From: Phaeosaccion multiseriatum
Taxonomy: Eukaryota > Protista > Ochrophyta, other classes
DNA length: 64,000 nucleotides
Reading direction: 5' to 3'
Assembly (NCBI GenBank): GCA_965112735.1
Contig: OZ218952.1
Location: 1,922,001-1,986,000 of the forward strand
A program made the translations under genes and the position numbers. Shown here in pieces: positions 20,729-26,891 of this stretch; positions within the stretch are counted from its first letter, which is position 1; the number at the start of each line of letters is the position of its first letter. The notes beneath the pieces are model-generated. The model did not search any database, was not told where the DNA came from, and saw only the letters and a program-made list of their open reading frames with translations.

Positions 20729-23700
20729 ATGCAGCAGTGGCAAGACGACGAAGGTGGTGACAAGACGGCCTTGCAAGCAGGAGATCATCTGCGCTACTCC
20801 ACCCTTGAGGAGAGGGCGCAGTTTGAGGGCTTTCAAGGCCGGCTCACACCAGAGCAAGAGGAATGCGTGGCGGCCTTGTTCGATGCCCTGAGTGCTGAGA
20901 GGCCCAAACTAGACGTGCGTCTCGTGCTCGGAGGGGGCGGGGGGCTGAGAAGACGGAGGGGACGGAGCTCGGCGCCAGCAGACACACCAGCAGCAGCAGT
21001 AGCAGCAGCAGCAGCTACAACTGGCGAAGAGGATGGTAGCCCCTCGCAGGCGCCGTCTGAGCCTCTCCGATTGTGCCTCATGCGCTACTTGAGAGGCAAC
21101 GGCTGGGACGTAGACAAGGCCCTCGCCCACATGAGGGAGTGCGCAGAGTGGAGGGAGCAGCAGGGCGTGCAGCACCTGCACCAGTCCACTCCGAGGGAGA
21201 TCCTGGACTGCAATCCGGGCCCAGGTGGGTGCTTGGGTAGTTTCCTGTTTTTATTCTCTCTCTCCTATCTATCTATCTATCTATCTTATCTCTTTCTTTC
21301 TCTCTCTCTCTTTTTGGATGACGGAGTGGGTGTGTTTGCGAGGCGGGGGGGGCATTGGGGGATGGAAGGGTCTTGCGTTATTTTGCAGCGAATGCAGTAG
21401 ACCCCAACCGCTTGGTGCTTTGAAGTGATATAAGACAATGGTCCTCACAACTCAGTTTTGTCCTGACACACATCGTCACCCGTCTCACCACCACCAACAA
21501 CAACCACAGTCAACGCCAACTTCCCCCACTGGTGCTTTGGACTGGACCGCGTTGGCCGTCCAGTGGTGCTCAAAAAGTACTCGGACTTCAAGACGTGGGA
21601 GATCAAAAAGTTCACCTCTCTGGACCGCCTGGTGCGCCTCCACCTGTGGGAGCAGGACAATATCTGCGCCGCCATGTGCGAGGCCTCGGAGGACAAGGGA
21701 CACATCGTGGACTCCATGGTGGTCATCATCGATGGTCCGTTTCATCTGTCTCTCTCTCCCTCAGTCTGTCTGTTTGTCTCTATCCTGTTGTCTCTAGCTC
21801 CATCTCTTCTCTCTCTCTATCTCTTCCTCTTCCTCTCTCTTTCACTATCACTTACCCACTCCCTCTCCTCTCTCTCACACACACACACTCATATGCCCTC
21901 ACTCTCACTCTGACTCTCTCAGTCAAGAACATGAGGGTCACGCAAGTCACCAAAGACTTCATTGGCTTGATGAAGCAGGTACGTGTGTGTTTCTGTGTGT
22001 GTGTGTGTGTGTGTGTGTGCCGGTTTTGCGTGTGATGGACTGACTGGCGAAGGTCCAAGTCGGCAGTGGAGATGCAGCTGCAGAAGAGGGACGAGAAGAA
22101 GAGGGCTTGTATCTCTCACTGCAACAGCACTACAACAGCATTACAACAGTACTACAGCAATTACCTCTCTCTCTTGCGAACCACATGCCGCCCCTCTCTT
22201 TTCCAACACCTTTCCTCTCTCCCTCCTCCTCTCCCATGTTGTTTTTCTTCACCACCACCAACCCTCACCGTCCAACAAACACACAATACACACACGACAC
22301 CAAATTCAAACATCCCCCCAACCACGCAACAACCCCACACGTGAAACAGGTGGCCTACATTGACCAGCGGCTCTTCCCTGAGCGACTCGGCAGCATGTTC
22401 ATCATCAACACGCCCTCCACCTTCAGTTACGTATGGGCCATGTTCACGCCCTTCCTCGACCCACGCACTGTGGCCAAGATCAAGATACACGCCAAGCCGA
22501 GCGCGTGGATGCCGGCCTTGAGGGCAGAGATGGACGAGTCTATCATCCCTGTTGAGTACGGAGGGACGGCCGGCTCCCTTGCGGACCTACCATACCTTCC
22601 CTCGCACTTTTGCGAGGACGAGGAGGATAAGGCTGCTGCTGCGGCTGCTTCTGCTGCAGCGGCGGCGGCGGCAGCAGCGGCAGCGGAAGGAGGAGGAGGG
22701 GTTGGGGTGGGGGAGGACGAGGAGGAAGGGAAGGAGGGGGAGGAGAGACTCTTCGAGCGAGGGAGAGACGCATCTTCCTCGGCAGGGGGCATGGAGGGGG
22801 GGGGGCGGCTTTTGCGGCGAAAGTCTTCCTTGTTTGGCCTCACGTCCCCACAGAAGAGTAACGGCAAGCGGCGGGAAGAGGACCAAGAGGTGGGCTGGAT
22901 GTCTACTCTGGGCACTGCCGTGACGTGGCCCCTGACCGGGCTCAGGGGATTGGGCACGTGGATGAGCGGCACTGGCACTGGCACTGGATCCTCTGTGGGA
23001 GAGGACGAGCGAGTCAGTGCTGCTGCTGCTGCTGATGATGACTATGACGACACGAGCAGCATCAACTCGGAGGAGTTCTTCGACGCGGTGGTGGGTATTG
23101 AGAGTGGAGACTTTGACCTGCCCCTCTACAAGCGACACCTCAGCGGCCGGAGGGTCCGTGGGAGCATCAGCGGTCGAACAGCCTCGAAGGAAGATGGTGG
23201 TGATGGTACGGCATCAGGCAGCAGCCGGAGTGATATGCCGTGCATGCGCTTCCTGTCCAAATCCCTGCAGTGGCGCTGCGTGTCCTACCTGTTGTCGGGC
23301 AGGGACCTCTCCAACCTGCTCAGCCTCAACAGAAGGGCCAACACCCTCTTCATGTTCTTGGCCTCCCTCGCCATCACCTTCGGCTCCTTCCTCATTGCCG
23401 ACGTGTACTGGGTCACTCACGTGGTGGTGTGGTTCATGTGGTGTGCGGCGCTCGTGGTGTGTCTGGCCTCCCTCCTCCTCCTGCTGGGCTTGTTCGGTCT
23501 CATGGCGACTCGCTACCGCAACCGAGTGAGCCTCGGCATGCATGCCATCTTCCTGGCGTGTGCGGCGGTGGTGCTGGTCGTGTGTGCAGGCGTCGCCTTT
23601 GCCTTTGCCGCGGGGGATGCCACCGTGGCGGGCATTTCATGGGAGGCCGTGCAGCAAGACCTGCCTGACGGCACTTCGGAGGAAGGTGAGGAGACACGGA

Positions 23701-26700
23701 AGGAAGAGATTTTTGAGACAAAGAGACAGAACGAGCCCTGCATACATAAGACTCGTGTTCGAGTCCCCCTCTGCTCTTTGTCTGGTGTTTTCTTAATTTT
23801 TGATCCGCCGCCCCGACAAACCGCCCTCCTCCTCCTCCTCCTCCTCCTCCTCCTCCTCCTCCTCCTCCCTTGCCGTACACATACACATACACACACACAC
23901 CTCCTCTCTTATGCAGACTTCTACTCCGACGCCAAGCTTCACTTCGCCCTCCTCGGAGTCGGCGCGTCCCTCCTCGGCCTATATAGCCTTGTGCCCATTT
24001 TCATCTCTCTGGAGCTGCACCAACGCCTCTCCCTCGTGCCCGCCCACGACAAGGATGGCACCGGATGGGCTCTGGAGCTGCAGATGAAGCGGGCGGTGCA
24101 GGAGTGCGTGGCCCTCGCTAGTGCCACGGCGCTCGTCTGCTGCGGCTTTGGCGTTTATGCGCTGCAATCTACGCTGCAGCGCGGCTTCACCACCGCTGTG
24201 GACAGGTACGTCGGGAGGGTGGGGATGGAGGGTGGGGTGGGGTGGGGTAGGGCGAGGAGGGCAGGGGAGAACAGAGCACACTCGAGTCTGTGAGGAGTAG
24301 ACCCGTAGCGCTCCTATATATATATACATAGCGCTATCACTCTCCAGCTCATGTATGTTTGTTTCAAAGGGAGGGCTGATGTAGAGCAAGGAGGGAAATG
24401 GGAGGGAGGGGAGGGAGAGGAGAAAGGGGGACGAGGAGAGAAGAGGGAGGACGGGTGGACGCTCTTGCTTTTGTCGCGCGCTCCTTCCGTCCTTTGGGTA
24501 GTCCTTTCATTGTTGAATCGCCTCACGCTTCCCTCACCCTTCTCCTGCTTGCCGCACTGGGAGAGCACTTTGATTGGAAGAATGAAACGGGGAAGACCCT
24601 CGTTGCCCGCCTTGAATCTCCCTTTGTCTCACTCCCTCCTTCCTCCTCCTCCTTCCCTTGTCCCTCTGCTGTGCCCCCAGCTACTACATGCTCCTCGCTC
24701 TTGGGACGGTGGTGCTCATCGTCAACGGAGTGGGCCTGTGGGCGAGTACATCGTATGACTCCCGCGTGTTTCAGATGCACCCCATCTTTGTGGGTATCAC
24801 CTTGGCCATGCTCATTCCCTGGGCTATCTATGCCTTCGCCTCCATCGGGAGCGTTGACGACGAGGTGAGTGAGAGAGGCTTCCACTTACACTCGCATTAA
24901 CACAGCTGAGCTTTGAATCTCTTTTGTAACCCGTCCATCTCTCATCCCTCACTGAACGGAGTGAGTCTTACACTCACATCGCTAAGCTTGGAATCCCTCT
25001 TGTGCCCCATCCCATCTCCTGTCCATCTCTCCTCCCTCACTGAACCAAACGATTACAACACACCACCGACATGTTTTTTCTGCTCAGGTGTTTGACCAAA
25101 TGTCGGAGGAGTACCTCGCGGCTGTAGACGCAGGGGATGGAGCGGCAGACAACGAAGAGCTCGACCAAGTCTTGCTGGATATTAACAAGATCCAGACTCG
25201 AATTAAGACGCAACTCATTGTGGTGGGAATCATGGAGCTCGTCACGGCATGCTGTCTCGTGGTGCAGGGTGTGTGTGTGCATTCATTGAAGCAACACACC
25301 GCCGCGTCCGGTCGAAGCGACACACGCGTTCTCTCCTCCAAGGCGGATGAAGCAAGAGGACGAGGCAGTGGAAGCACAGGAGGAGGAGGAGGAGGAGGAG
25401 GAGGAGGAGGAGGAGGAGGAAGGGAAGGGGGAGGCGAAGGAGGAGCAGCAGCAGCAGCAGCAGCAGCAGGAGGAGGAGGAGGAGGAGGCGGAGCAGGCGG
25501 GGGAAGGAAGCGGAGGCTCAAGCGCGCAGAGATGGTCGTACTCGTGTGGGCGCTGCTCGTGGGCATCTCGCTCATCTTCTTTGACGGAAGCTTTGTCATA
25601 TTCTCCGAGTGGGTGAGCTCCAGCCGGCGGCCGTGGGTGGCCGGGCTGTGGTACGATATCGGCAAAGTGGATTCGAGATACCTCACAGGGGACTCTTTTG
25701 TCGTGAGCATGGAGGCCACGCTTGCCCTCTTGGGGGGTCCGCTCATGCTCATCTACGCATGGGCCATTTACACCAGACATTCCATGCGGTGGTCATTGGG
25801 CACAGTGGGGTGCTGCTTACTCATACTCGCTCAGCTGTAAGTGCATGTACAGGGCCGTTGGTGGTACAGGGTAGAGGGCGGGCAGAGTGCAGGGCGAAGT
25901 TCCTTGCTCGCTCTTTATTTACCTGCTGACCTTGCCGCTGAGCTCATTATCTTGAAACTGCGCTGCCCTTTCCTTTCCCTGCAACCTCTCCACCATTCCC
26001 ATACGCACACGCGCACGAAAACACAATGAAGCCTTTATTACGTGACGGAGATGCTAGACAGCTTCAAACACACGCTCAAGCACAGGTGCGTGGGTGCGTG
26101 CGTGCGTGGGAGCGTGTACGACCGAGTGAGGCTACGGGGTGGTAGATAGGGGTGGGATCGCGAAGACTTTTACGTGTATTGCTTATGCTTACATGTGGGG
26201 CAGAGCAATAGCGCTGGGCTTTCCACCTCTCCTGCTACCCCTCCGCTGACTTACAAACTCCCCTACTCTTCCGTCGTTTGTGGTACTGGTAAACTGCTTC
26301 TCTGCTCTGTTTCCTTGCAATCCGCCCCCCCCCCCCCCTTCTCAGCGGCGTGGTGCCCTTTGTGACTGTGTTCGTCTGTCTGGGCCTGATCCGACTGGTG
26401 GTGCCGTGCTTTGTGCTTGCCTATAATCTCAAGCACATGGACAAGCGGGTACACGCCGCCGAAGTAAAGTATTACAAACTACTCAAGGTATGCAAAGGAA
26501 GGAACACCCCCTCAGCCTCCCGACCCGCACCCAAGCCTTTCACAACAGAGGCCATAGTCCATCCAGTCAAGGCAGGGACGGCTTCGGGCGTGGGTGTGGG
26601 GGAGGGGTGGAGGACGGGGGAGAAGGGGGGGGGGGCGGAGAGGACGCTCGTTACGGGACGCGGAGGCGAAGGAGTTGAATGCCATCCAATACATCTTTTA

Positions 26701-26891
26701 ATCACCTTGCTCCTCCTCCTCCTCCTCCTCCTCCCCATCCACTGCCATCACCTTCCCAGGAGCACGAGAAGCTGCATAAGACAGTGACCAAGGAGCGCAG
26801 GCCCCTCTTGACGGACTCTGAGACGGAGTTTCGCGCGAGCCGCCTCCGGAGCAAGCGCCCCCCTAGTGGCAGGTGGGGGTGGAATAAGTGA
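20729..26891 (+). CDS. Sec14/CRAL-TRIO domain fused to an FFAT-like motif, two tetraspanin-like 4-TM blocks and an EBP/EXPERA domain
   Basis: Phase-consistent exons 20729-21224, 21510-21734, 21923-21978, 22350-23685, 23917-24205, 24681-24864, 25088-25836, 26032-26085, 26346-26487, 26760-26891. Motifs: CRAL-TRIO-N LMRYLRGNGWDVDKA; Sec14 GLDRVGRPV, FPERLGSMFIINTP..FLDPRTVAKI..IPVEYGG; EEFFDA; tetraspanin-like NTLF..LGLFGLMATRYRNR; EBP-like WYDIGKVDSRYLTGDSFVVSME. Confidence 0.9.

Follow-up and report, generated by a model that had tools for sequence, protein, structure and literature searches.

Among known systems, the closest functional analogues of the protein described here are STARD3, LetA-LetB and TUPAL. 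STARD3 (MLN64) handles sterol transfer at the late endosome of animals, and its anchor is the four-TM cholesterol-binding MENTAL domain. STARD3 builds contacts of the ER with other organelles, such as ER-endosome contacts, and joins in one protein its multi-pass transmembrane (TM) anchor, a FFAT-type motif for docking to VAP on the ER, and a lipid-transfer domain in the cytosol (PMC7705450); TM-anchored lipid-transfer proteins with a FFAT motif are an already known means of lipid movement at organelle contacts. LetA is a pseudodimer of two tetraspanin-like domains that loads LetB (PMC13017536), and the TUPALs, including PfTUPA, have a tetraspanin-like 4-TM pair in fusion with a lipid-transfer domain (bioRxiv 10.64898/2026.09.11.750981). 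Work of 2026 showed that the tetraspanin-like domain pair, in LetA and in TUPAL, transports lipid within the membrane and feeds a transfer domain (PMC13017536; bioRxiv 10.64898/2026.09.11.750981).

In the window, by which we mean the whole 64,000-nt stretch of Phaeosaccion multiseriatum DNA that was analysed, a single gene encodes a Sec14 head, a FFAT-like linker and a 12-TM membrane body (Table 1). A literature search for the Sec14 - tetraspanin-like - EBP architecture found no paper describing it, in agreement with a previous reading of this DNA from its letters alone (the sequence-only reading), which knew of no description of it.

Table 1. Position of the gene and its predicted parts in the window
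Feature	Position	Strand	Remarks
Whole gene	20729..26891	+	10 exons; 1220 codons + stop
Exons 1-5	20729-21224, 21510-21734, 21923-21978, 22350-23685, 23917-24205	+	rebuilt from raw sequence
Exons 6-10	24681-24864, 25088-25836, 26032-26085, 26346-26487, 26760-26891	+	rebuilt from raw sequence
Sec14/CRAL-TRIO head	21047..22586	+	aa ~107-338, exons 1-4
Low-complexity cytosolic linker, ~250 aa, Ala/Gly/Glu/Ser-rich	22587..23324	+	Sec14 head to TM1, within exon 4
FFAT-like motif	23034..23093	+	acidic/Ser tract DDDYDDTSSINSE at aa 488-500, then core
Tetraspanin-like 4-TM block 1	23325..24038	+	aa ~585-745; exon 4 (TM1-3) and exon 5 (TM4)
Tetraspanin-like 4-TM block 2	24051..25291	+	aa ~750-930; exons 5-7
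Gly/Ala/Glu-rich cytosolic linker	25292..25510	+	TM8 to EXPERA domain; mostly in-frame (AGG)n repeat
EBP/EXPERA-like 4-TM domain	25511..26436	+	aa ~1004-1160; exons 7-9
Basic cytosolic C-terminal tail + stop	26437..26891	+	aa 1161-1220

Gene structure and relatives

Rebuilding the gene from the raw sequence reproduced the ten phase-consistent exons of the sequence-only reading: all nine introns have GT...AG ends, the exon phases match, and a single ORF runs throughout. Two of the exons each span two domains, with exactly the coordinates and contents previously claimed. Exon 4 (445 codons) leads from the C-terminal half of Sec14 through the linker into TM1-3, and exon 7 links the final helix of 4-TM block 2 with the EBP-like domain. 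At the local base composition the chance of such an open frame was 1.2e-6 for exon 4 and 4e-5 for exon 7 (2e-4 for the linker stretch between Sec14 and TM1), and the alternative two frames of these exons contained 4-14 stops. The GC3 of the coding sequence was 0.725, compared with an intron GC of 0.54. When aligned with the full-length relatives P0004, P0003 and P0002, eight of the nine splice junctions were free of gaps and junction 8/9 had one extra residue; P0125 aligned likewise from junction 4/5 onward. The nearest full-length relatives in the protein libraries are 28-35% identical to the Phaeosaccion protein.

Family relatives were recovered by an exhaustive HMMER search and an alignment-seeded search. 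Folds and profiles were computed on the orthologue P0004 and on family alignments, and the Phaeosaccion protein was mapped onto them locally. The domain-architecture check across databases returned the same collinear order, Sec14 followed by eight TM helices and EBP, in more than 20 proteins (cluster representatives, 835-1382 aa), all of them labelled hypothetical. Named members include Chrysoparadoxa CAM9708001.1, Triparma GMI45280.1 and Pelagophyceae sp. CCMP2097 KAJ1447401.1. A Paraphysomonas MMETSP transcript carries the same domains according to Pfam, a Tribonema transcript covers the membrane part only, and relative P0003 is a single 3408-nt ORF within a 3889-nt contig. The Sec14/8-TM/EBP family is kept across ochrophyte stramenopiles.

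Long linkers of low complexity separate the domains, and the Phaeosaccion gene model was read from genomic sequence alone, both of which would suit an annotation artefact in which two or three neighbouring Sec14, TM and EBP genes were read as one. Such an artefact is nevertheless scarcely credible. Domain boundaries fall inside single open exons (chance 1e-6 to 4e-5), the junctions align to relatives with a gap of one residue at most, and the fusion recurs in more than 20 proteins of independent source, among them some from transcript assemblies and one encoded by an unbroken 3408-nt ORF. The merged-gene reading is effectively refuted by these observations, and the previous judgement that merging was unlikely holds, since the collinear order is common to more than 20 independent proteins, some of them from transcript assemblies.

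Sec14 head and FFAT-like motif

By its profile matches the head is a classical CRAL-TRIO domain of the yeast Sec14p/Sfh type. The Sec14 domain proposed from the letters was confirmed by a Pfam CRAL_TRIO match well over the cut-off on the exon-4 half alone (65.6 bits, cut-off 22.6, 5.7e-18), and the orthologues scored 92-124 bits per domain. CRAL_TRIO_N gave 22.4 bits in the Phaeosaccion protein against a cut-off of 23 (24-35 bits in orthologues), and the motif LT..Q...L..L was found at its N-terminus. A conserved N-terminal helix region lies upstream of the CRAL-TRIO head, in exon 1. Yeast Sec14p was matched by exon 2 with E=5.5e-4 and by the orthologue head with 1.2e-27, the closest proteins to the orthologue head being Sec14p, Sfh1 and Sfh5. 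Thr175 of Sec14p, which we take to be a contact position for the PtdCho headgroup, is Val in the Phaeosaccion head. Ser173, which contacts PtdCho in Sec14p (bioRxiv 10.1101/2022.08.01.502361), is Met; in the orthologues the two positions are occupied by L/A, V/V and V/I. A second ligand would therefore not be PtdCho bound in the manner of Sec14p.

The disordered, low-complexity linker that follows carries GCN and AGG-type repeats (22635-22745) and, on the predicted cytosolic side, the FFAT-like motif. The sequence-only reading had named a FFAT-like element; the core EFFDAVV (aa 501-507, 23073-23093) stands directly after an acidic tract, and its position proved to be conserved across the family linkers. 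The published search pattern describes a core E-F-F-D-A-x-E with an upstream acidic tract (PMC3261905). EFFDAVV fits this pattern (PMC3261905), with ideal positions 1-5, except at position 7, where Val is not in [DESTGNQ]. The residues F2, D4 and A5 are kept in 15 of the 20 family-alignment rows listed, with P0004 (V) and P0007 (P) as exceptions at position 5, and the family consensus [DS]S..[ST]S.F.DA.[DE] forms one aligned block amid otherwise unalignable linkers. The motif is near-canonical FFAT in the window's clade (EFFDA, EFFDV, EFFES); many family members have A, S, G or Q at position 3, which is sub-optimal for VAP binding. Both the Val at position 7 and the often non-aromatic position 3 count against VAP docking.

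Yeast Sec14p presents phosphatidylinositol to PI 4-kinase, and the fusion could be a signalling scaffold in which the head does the same at a particular membrane, the 12-TM body does no more than anchor it or organise a microdomain, as in tetraspanin webs, and F.DA binds a non-VAP partner. This would agree with a head closest to Sec14p, Sfh1 and Sfh5, with a motif position 3 that is neither aromatic nor hydrophobic in many family members, and with the organisation of membranes for which tetraspanins are best known (PMC13017536). We consider the scaffold rather unlikely, however, since it does not account for the fixed order in which a ligand-binding EXPERA fold and two tetraspanin-like bundles are retained across algal classes; the near-canonical motif of the window's clade (EFFDA, EFFDV, EFFES) and the loss of the PtdCho contact Ser173 also speak against it.

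Membrane body

Twelve TM helices (8 + 4) were counted in the Phaeosaccion protein, one fewer than the approximately 13 claimed from the letters. AF2 packs the three 4-TM modules as one confident body, with a pTM of 0.80 for 8 TM and 0.78 for 12 TM. The predicted cytosolic loops hold 33 K+R and 12 D+E, and the opposite side 11 K+R and 26 D+E. With the N-terminus predicted to be cytosolic, the EXPERA unit and each of the two tetraspanin-like units would lie in canonical orientation, giving a coherent topology.

Each of the first two blocks has four TM helices with both termini cytosolic, as judged by hydropathy, the positive-inside count and the AF2 helices. The alignment of block 1 with block 2 by hhalign had a probability of 97.1% (E=6e-11, 166 columns), and the internal repeat within the Phaeosaccion protein alone reached z=4.8. 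The Pfam Tetraspanin score was 26.2 bits for the Phaeosaccion piece, under the cut-off of 32.1, and 35 bits, over the cut-off, for relative P0046. Searched against PDB sequences, the 8-TM family profile matched CD81 (3.7e-7), TSPAN15 (3.2e-4), TSPAN7 (4.6e-4) and CD9 (1e-3); five of its ten matches were significant, all of them tetraspanins, and the weak tail comprised CD53, UPK1B and three designed helical proteins. The block-2 profile matched Tetraspanin-7 with 2.1e-4. VIA-align placed the AF2 model near PRPH2/ROM1 (Z 16.4), UPK1A (16.3), UPK1B (16.0) and CD81 (13.7). Because designed 4-helix bundles reached Z 15.7, a small margin below the best tetraspanin at 16.4, the tetraspanin relation was rested on sequence profiles and not on the fold alone. 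Foldseek on the 8-TM model gave no significant match; its top entries were GPCRs with TM-scores of 0.13-0.24, which are noise for an all-helical bundle. By their profiles, the two blocks are homologous 'headless' tetraspanin-like bundles in tandem.

In the Phaeosaccion protein the TM3-TM4 loop of block 1 is 31 aa long and has no Cys, and the TM7-TM8 loop of block 2 is an acidic, predicted helical stalk of 46 aa. Across the family, the EC2 equivalents measure 7-34 aa in block 1, where all 18 of 18 members are Cys-free, and those of block 2 measure 32-57 aa; no CCG motif occurs in the EC2 equivalents of either block in any family member examined. The sole CCG of the Phaeosaccion protein is inside TM5. 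Lacking a large EC2, the CCG and the disulfide cysteines, the blocks were rejected as canonical tetraspanins. In CD81, Glu219 hydrogen-bonds cholesterol (PMC7863897). This residue aligns to a conserved Pro in TM4 of the family, and cholesterol binding therefore cannot be carried over from CD81. Of the double tetraspanin first proposed, the relation of the blocks to each other and to tetraspanins stands by profiles, whereas canonical identity and the cholesterol Glu of CD81 do not.

The linker behind TM8 is largely a repeat with period 3 and 46 copies (25378-25516, Tandem Repeats Finder), and the gap between the centres of TM8 and the first EXPERA helix is ~100 aa, compared with ~50 aa in P0004. 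Pfam EBP (PF05241) scored 23.6 bits on the exon-7 fragment, against a cut-off of 25.7, and 29.5-40.1 bits, over this cut-off, in orthologues. Human EBP (6oht) was matched with 2.9e-9 by the Phaeosaccion piece and with 8.9e-26 by the family EBP profile; the orthologue AF2 model superposed on 6oht with Z 19.4 (rmsd 1.6 A over 159 residues) and on the sigma-2 receptor (7m93) with Z 13.9. Eleven residues are described as determinants of EBP activity: H76, E80, W101, Y104, D108, R110, Y111, E122, T125, N193 and W196 (PMC4263179). The Phaeosaccion domain keeps W101, D108, R110, Y111 and E122 and has Asp for E80, with the substitutions H76L, Y104I and T125L in the direct alignment of the Phaeosaccion piece and N193G and W196R through the family profile. 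The positions of E80 and E122 are freely variable across the family, and a His at the H76 position is retained in P0016, P0013, P0095 and P0058. Given the loss of H76, Y104, T125, N193 and W196, it is improbable that the domain works as an active EBP isomerase of the delta8-delta7 type. The EBP/EXPERA part of the sequence-only reading thus holds as homology (8.9e-26, Z 19.4), with key isomerase residues lost. From its fold we infer that the EXPERA domain may bind sterol.

SEC14L2/SPF is said to serve squalene epoxidase by delivering or removing substrate. By analogy the EXPERA domain could be an active isomerase-type enzyme on a sterol or lipid intermediate, with the Sec14 head delivering or removing its substrate. 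The true homology to EBP (8.9e-26, Z 19.4), the retention of W101, D108, R110, Y111 and E122 in the Phaeosaccion protein and the His at H76 in P0016, P0013, P0095 and P0058 would be compatible with such channelling. It is made improbable by Leu at H76, Ile at Y104, Leu at T125, Gly at N193 and Arg at W196, all of them among the 11 determinants (PMC4263179), and by the free variation of the E80 and E122 positions in the family.

The C-terminal tail has 11 K+R within its first 40 residues, and its helix motif RV.AAE.KY.KL is conserved in the window's clade.

Proposed function and comparison with known systems

The reading that we prefer, and to which we give evenly balanced confidence, is that the Phaeosaccion protein, anchored in a membrane, transfers or senses lipid at ER contacts. 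The 12-TM body would sit within one membrane, and the FFAT-like motif would dock the linker onto an ER MSP-domain (VAP) protein. The tethered Sec14 head could then shuttle or present lipid across the gap, while the paired tetraspanin-like bundles, together with an EXPERA pocket that is not catalytic, might bind, mobilise or sense lipid within the bilayer, the ligand possibly being sterol. EXPERA proteins are typically ER residents, and with such residence a VAP tether would be cis rather than trans, which counts against this reading. The lipid pockets of tetraspanins and LetA face the extracytoplasmic side and the Sec14 head is cytosolic, which likewise counts against it.

More tentatively, and with the odds against it, the headless tetraspanin-like pair could be a eukaryotic intramembrane lipid mobiliser of LetA-like logic and true-tetraspanin origin, built into one chain with a Sec14 shuttle, a motif for ER docking and an EXPERA sterol pocket that is not catalytic. 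If so, the fusion would be 'Rosetta-stone' evidence for the tetraspanin TM core as a lipid-handling device, and the family would establish, for ochrophyte algae, self-contained lipid transporters of contact sites as a new class. Cooperation among the parts, if it occurs, would argue for lipid handling by the tetraspanin core and by the EXPERA fold alongside a shuttle domain, with a bearing on the actual roles of animal tetraspanins, TMEM97 and TM6SF2. Ochrophytes include ecologically important pelagophytes, bolidophytes and chrysophytes, and the family flags an unstudied lipid-trafficking route in these algae.

The sequence-only reading had named none of these analogues. The likeness to LetA-LetB and TUPAL is one of logic only, a pseudodimer of two consecutive tetraspanin-like 4-TM domains combined with a lipid-transfer domain. 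The 8-TM profile aligned to E. coli LetA by hhalign had a probability of 0.1%, with no detectable sequence relation; LetA (9n8w) was absent from both VIA-align structural match lists, and Pfam PqiA had no match in the family members scanned. With this hhalign value, no Pfam PqiA match and an all-helical AF2 model, in which the periplasmic beta-sheet of LetA is missing, membership in LetA/PqiA was rejected. By sequence the Phaeosaccion blocks are nearer to true tetraspanins, their partner is a cytosolic Sec14 and not an extracytoplasmic MCE or TULIP domain, and the EXPERA domain is extra. With tetraspanins the blocks share four TM helices, cytosolic ends and the TM2-loop-TM3 signature F.G..G....N..LL..Y, and tetraspanins were the top structural matches and all of the significant PDB sequence matches; the blocks differ in an EC2 of only 7-57 residues, in having no CCG or conserved cysteines, in Pro for Glu219 and in being tandem units.

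The last module has the 4-TM EXPERA fold of human EBP, TMEM97 and TM6SF2 and belongs to the same sequence family, and the fusion family retains W...GDSRY, GP and the R147-equivalent position of the EXPERA superfamily. Unlike EBP, the Phaeosaccion protein is without EBP TM1, H76, Y104, T125, N193 and W196, resembling the non-isomerase EXPERA members in these losses, and its EXPERA unit forms the C-terminal part of a fusion of 1220 aa. The classical CRAL-TRIO head is shared with yeast Sec14p/Sfh and with plant Sec14-nodulin and patellin proteins, and fusions in which a membrane-targeting module is attached to a Sec14 head are familiar from plants. The Phaeosaccion head differs from Sec14p and from the plant fusions in being covalently joined to a 12-TM integral body and in having Met for Ser173.

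STARD3 is alike in logic only, with a TM anchor, a FFAT motif and a transfer domain in one polypeptide. There is no homology: START stands against a Sec14 head, and MENTAL against tetraspanin-like and EXPERA units. The domain order is reversed, 4 TM helices compare with 12 in the Phaeosaccion protein, and the Phaeosaccion FFAT-like motif is of the conventional acidic type, not phospho-FFAT. The family unites an anchor, an ER-docking-type tag, a tetraspanin-like pair, a lipid carrier and an EBP fold in a single chain; what is new is the Sec14 head, the headless tetraspanin-like pair and the degenerate EBP fold, parts not previously seen together.

Gene model and relatives

Scripted splicing of the raw sequence gave ten exons (Table) with agreeing phases and GT...AG introns throughout, and a predicted product of 1220 aa, the splice model being built from genomic DNA. 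The sequence-only reading had proposed ten phase-consistent exons, and both this arrangement and its coordinates and contents for exons 4 and 7 were exactly reproduced. The surrounding region is GC-rich eukaryotic DNA with introns rich in microsatellites and exons carrying trinucleotide repeats. GC3 of the gene was 0.725, against a GC content of 0.54 in the introns. Given the local composition, the chance of an open frame was 1.2e-6 for exon 4 and 4e-5 for exon 7, and the alternative frames of these exons contained 4-14 stops.

Relatives were sought by an exhaustive HMMER search of 1.84 billion representatives with exon 4 as query, which matched 1418 proteins; at the head of the list stood long proteins matched in more than one place. 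A local phmmer comparison with the spliced model, restricted to proteins from this match list, gave over 20 representatives with lengths of 835-1382 aa, collinear over the Sec14 domain, TM block 1, TM block 2 and the EBP domain. Pfam found CRAL_TRIO and EBP in these relatives, with Tetraspanin recurrent but sub-threshold. The named sources were ochrophyte stramenopiles throughout, with proteins labelled as hypothetical or just "CRAL-TRIO domain-containing". The two closest relatives, Chrysoparadoxa australica CAM9708001.1 and database entry P0003, are each about 35% identical to the window protein along its whole length. Other named members are Triparma columacea GMI45280.1, Pelagophyceae sp. 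CCMP2097 KAJ1447401.1, a Paraphysomonas MMETSP transcript, and a Tribonema gayanum transcript of 770 aa which covers the membrane part alone with no Sec14 match and may be partial. P0003 is a single 3408-nt ORF within a 3889-nt contig that looks like a transcript. The window's own protein had no entry in the protein libraries searched.

Eight of the nine splice junctions were gap-free against P0003, the relative P0002 and P0004 (the orthologue used for folding and profiles), and also against a further relative, P0125, from junction 4/5 on; at junction 8/9 there is one extra residue. Collinear full-length relatives with matching junctions exclude a gene-merging artefact for practical purposes, which the sequence-only reading had called unlikely, and at the level of the gene model the locus is read as one gene. 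An annotation artefact is considered very improbable.

Table. Exons of the predicted gene, from scripted splicing of the raw sequence, and other features (window positions)
Feature	Position	Content
Exon 1 (+)	20729-21224	
Exon 2 (+)	21510-21734	
Exon 3 (+)	21923-21978	
Exon 4 (+)	22350-23685	C-terminal half of Sec14 domain, linker of ~250 aa, TM1-3
Exon 5 (+)	23917-24205	
Exon 6 (+)	24681-24864	
Exon 7 (+)	25088-25836	TM8, Gly/Ala-rich linker, first three EBP-like helices
Exon 8 (+)	26032-26085	
Exon 9 (+)	26346-26487	
Exon 10 (+)	26760-26891	
FFAT-like motif	23034-23093 (aa 488-507)	DDDYDDTSSINSE then EFFDAVV
In-frame trinucleotide repeat	22635-22745	GCN/AGG-type
In-frame trinucleotide repeat	25378-25516	(AGG)46
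Intron microsatellites	21255-21311, 21983-22019, 23825-23868	(TC)n, (GT)n, perfect (CCT)14.7
Helix motif after last EXPERA helix	26437-26560	RV.AAE[VIL][KQ]Y.KL
Tandem repeat spanning stop codon	26868-26935	2.9 copies of 24-nt unit GGCTGGTGGGGGTGGAATAAGTGA

The Sec14 head and its linker

The Sec14 domain proposed earlier proved real. Yeast Sec14p was the best match of the orthologue head (1.2e-27), ahead of Sfh5, Sfh1 and SEC14L2, and exon 2 of the window aligns directly with Sec14p. The predicted head is of the classical Sec14 fold. In this alignment Ser173 of Sec14p, a PtdCho-headgroup contact, is replaced by Met and Thr175 by Val, and both positions are hydrophobic in the orthologues as well. 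The head of the window protein probably does not bind PtdCho in the manner of Sec14p. Two CRAL_TRIO domains precede the same membrane body in the relatives P0005, P0011, P0058, P0170, P0171 and P0172, and three in P0169, whose N-terminus also has a stray chitin-synthase fragment match that may reflect a merged gene model.

The FFAT-like motif noted earlier lies in the linker that follows and is the one alignable block among the linkers of 20 family members, with the consensus [DS]S..[ST]S.F.DA.[DE]; F2, D4 and A5 were retained together in 15 of the 20 aligned rows. Compared with a published search pattern (PMC3261905), EFFDAVV is ideal at positions 1-5 and mismatched at position 7 only. The block reads SSLNSEEFFDVMA in Chrysoparadoxa, DSVDSDEFFESMS in P0003, NFYDTVA in P0002, and FADALD, FSDALD or FYDAVE in further members. 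Many family members have a small or polar residue at position 3, which is sub-optimal for VAP. That so short a motif is retained in a cytosolic linker which is of low complexity and does not align elsewhere speaks for its being functional. VAP binding is a candidate role.

A second motif, W..EL.F[LI], lies a few residues past F.DA in many members (among them P0005, P0016, P0013, P0051, P0095 and P0007) and is not clearly present in the clade of the window protein and its nearest relatives. The in-frame trinucleotide repeats encode Gly/Glu/Ala runs of two cytosolic linkers. These linkers are shorter and free of such repeats in the closest orthologues, so the repeats look like species-specific expansions.

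The membrane body

By hydropathy the window protein has 8 + 4 helices, as do its relatives, not the roughly 13 first estimated. The first eight form two related blocks: their profiles matched each other with an hhalign probability of 97.1% (E=6e-11, 166 columns), and TM2-3 resembled TM6-7 inside the window protein (z=4.8 over shuffles). The 8-TM family profile had ten matches at E up to 10 among PDB sequences, of which the five significant ones were all tetraspanins: CD81 twice (3.7e-7, 1.6e-5), TSPAN15 (3.2e-4), TSPAN7 (4.6e-4) and CD9 (1e-3). The weak tail comprised CD53, UPK1B and three designed helical proteins. By itself, the block-2 profile matched TSPAN7 best (2.1e-4), and blocks and tetraspanins have in common a TM2-loop-TM3 signature, F.G..G....N..LL..Y. 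The AF2 model of the orthologue 8-TM region was confident (pLDDT 88, pTM 0.80). It resembled most closely PRPH2/ROM1 (Z 16.4 over 163 residues, rmsd 2.9 A), the uroplakins 1A (16.3) and 1B (16.0) and CD81 (13.7, rmsd 2.2 A), and block 1 matched Tspan15 (10.6); since designed bundles and MS4A proteins scored nearly as high, this fold evidence is weak by itself.

A canonical tetraspanin was ruled out. The equivalents of the large extracellular loop EC2 have 7-34 residues in block 1 and 32-57 in block 2; in the 18 members checked the CCG motif was absent from both, and none had a cysteine in that of block 1. The lack of these hallmarks leads us to class the predicted blocks as "headless" tetraspanin-related cores. 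Cholesterol binding, which had been carried over from tetraspanins, cannot be inferred from CD81, since Glu219, which coordinates cholesterol there (PMC7863897), aligns with a conserved proline of the family. A tetraspanin-like block occurs alone in P0046 (338 aa; 35 bits, above the Pfam Tetraspanin cut-off), P0070 (206 aa) and P0019 (651 aa). These short or fragmentary proteins may be relatives of the block that stand alone, or their gene models may be truncated.

The last four helices bore out the proposed EBP/EXPERA similarity. The exon-7 piece matched human EBP at 2.9e-9 and the family profile matched EBP TM2-5 at 8.9e-26, while the AF2 model superposed on the human EBP structure 6oht with Z 19.4 (rmsd 1.6 A, 159 residues); for the sigma-2 receptor Z was 13.9. 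Eleven residues have been given as determinants of EBP activity (PMC4263179). W101, D108, R110, Y111 and E122 are retained in the window protein; H76 is changed to Leu, Y104 to Ile, T125 to Leu, N193 to Gly, W196 to Arg and E80 to Asp. Family members differ from one another at the E80 and E122 positions. An enzyme supplied with substrate by the Sec14 head is improbable given this loss of catalytic residues.

The helix motif directly after the last EXPERA helix is conserved in the window's clade only (P0004, P0003, P0125). Through the tandem repeat across the stop codon, the last codons and TGA are duplicated just downstream.

With a cytosolic N-terminus, loop charges were 33 K+R and 12 D+E on the predicted cytosolic side and 11 K+R and 26 D+E on the other; this orientation is canonical for tetraspanins. 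Given the cytosolic C-terminus of EBP, EXPERA TM2-5 presumably begin and end in the cytosol, making the predicted orientation canonical there too. The AF2 model of the whole 12-TM region (pLDDT 85.7, pTM 0.78) hints that the three 4-TM modules may pack as one body.

Proposed mechanism and known systems

The family consists of conserved integral membrane proteins whose Sec14 lipid-binding head is held by a long, flexible stretch in the cytosol, and this stretch carries a conserved FFAT-like motif. This motif could dock to an ER MSP/VAP protein, and the head would then shuttle or present lipid between the ER and whichever membrane the 12-TM body sits in. For a body resident in the ER itself, this would take place inside the ER. 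The body may bind, mobilise or sense the lipid handled by the head. The EXPERA fold is the sole feature that points to sterol as that lipid. Two observations count against such a mechanism, namely that the pockets known from tetraspanins and LetA point to the side away from the Sec14 head, and that many members have a sub-optimal residue at FFAT position 3. A PtdIns-presenting signalling scaffold, with the TM body as a mere anchor, appears rather unlikely.

Docking and shuttling is made a natural reading by two precedents. One is STARD3, which acts where ER and endosome meet and unites a TM anchor with an FFAT motif and a transfer domain (PMC7705450). The other is LetA, a pseudodimer of two tetraspanin-like domains which loads LetB (PMC13017536); protist TUPALs have 2x4-TM modules related to it, joined to TULIP transfer domains (bioRxiv 10.64898/2026.09.11.750981). 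Full-text literature searches found no description of a Sec14/CRAL-TRIO, tetraspanin and EXPERA/EBP architecture, in line with the sequence-only reading, and databases know the family solely as hypothetical proteins. Every part is nevertheless already known, and so is the principle of anchoring a lipid-transfer protein that bears an FFAT motif, so the combination is not categorically new; its interest is that tetraspanin-like and EXPERA folds are physically tied to a lipid shuttle. No sequence relation to LetA was detectable. In contrast to LetA and the TUPALs, the TM units of the present family are nearer to true tetraspanins, the transfer domain is a Sec14 domain facing the cytosol, and there is an EXPERA domain as well. 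The family is a third, independent combination.
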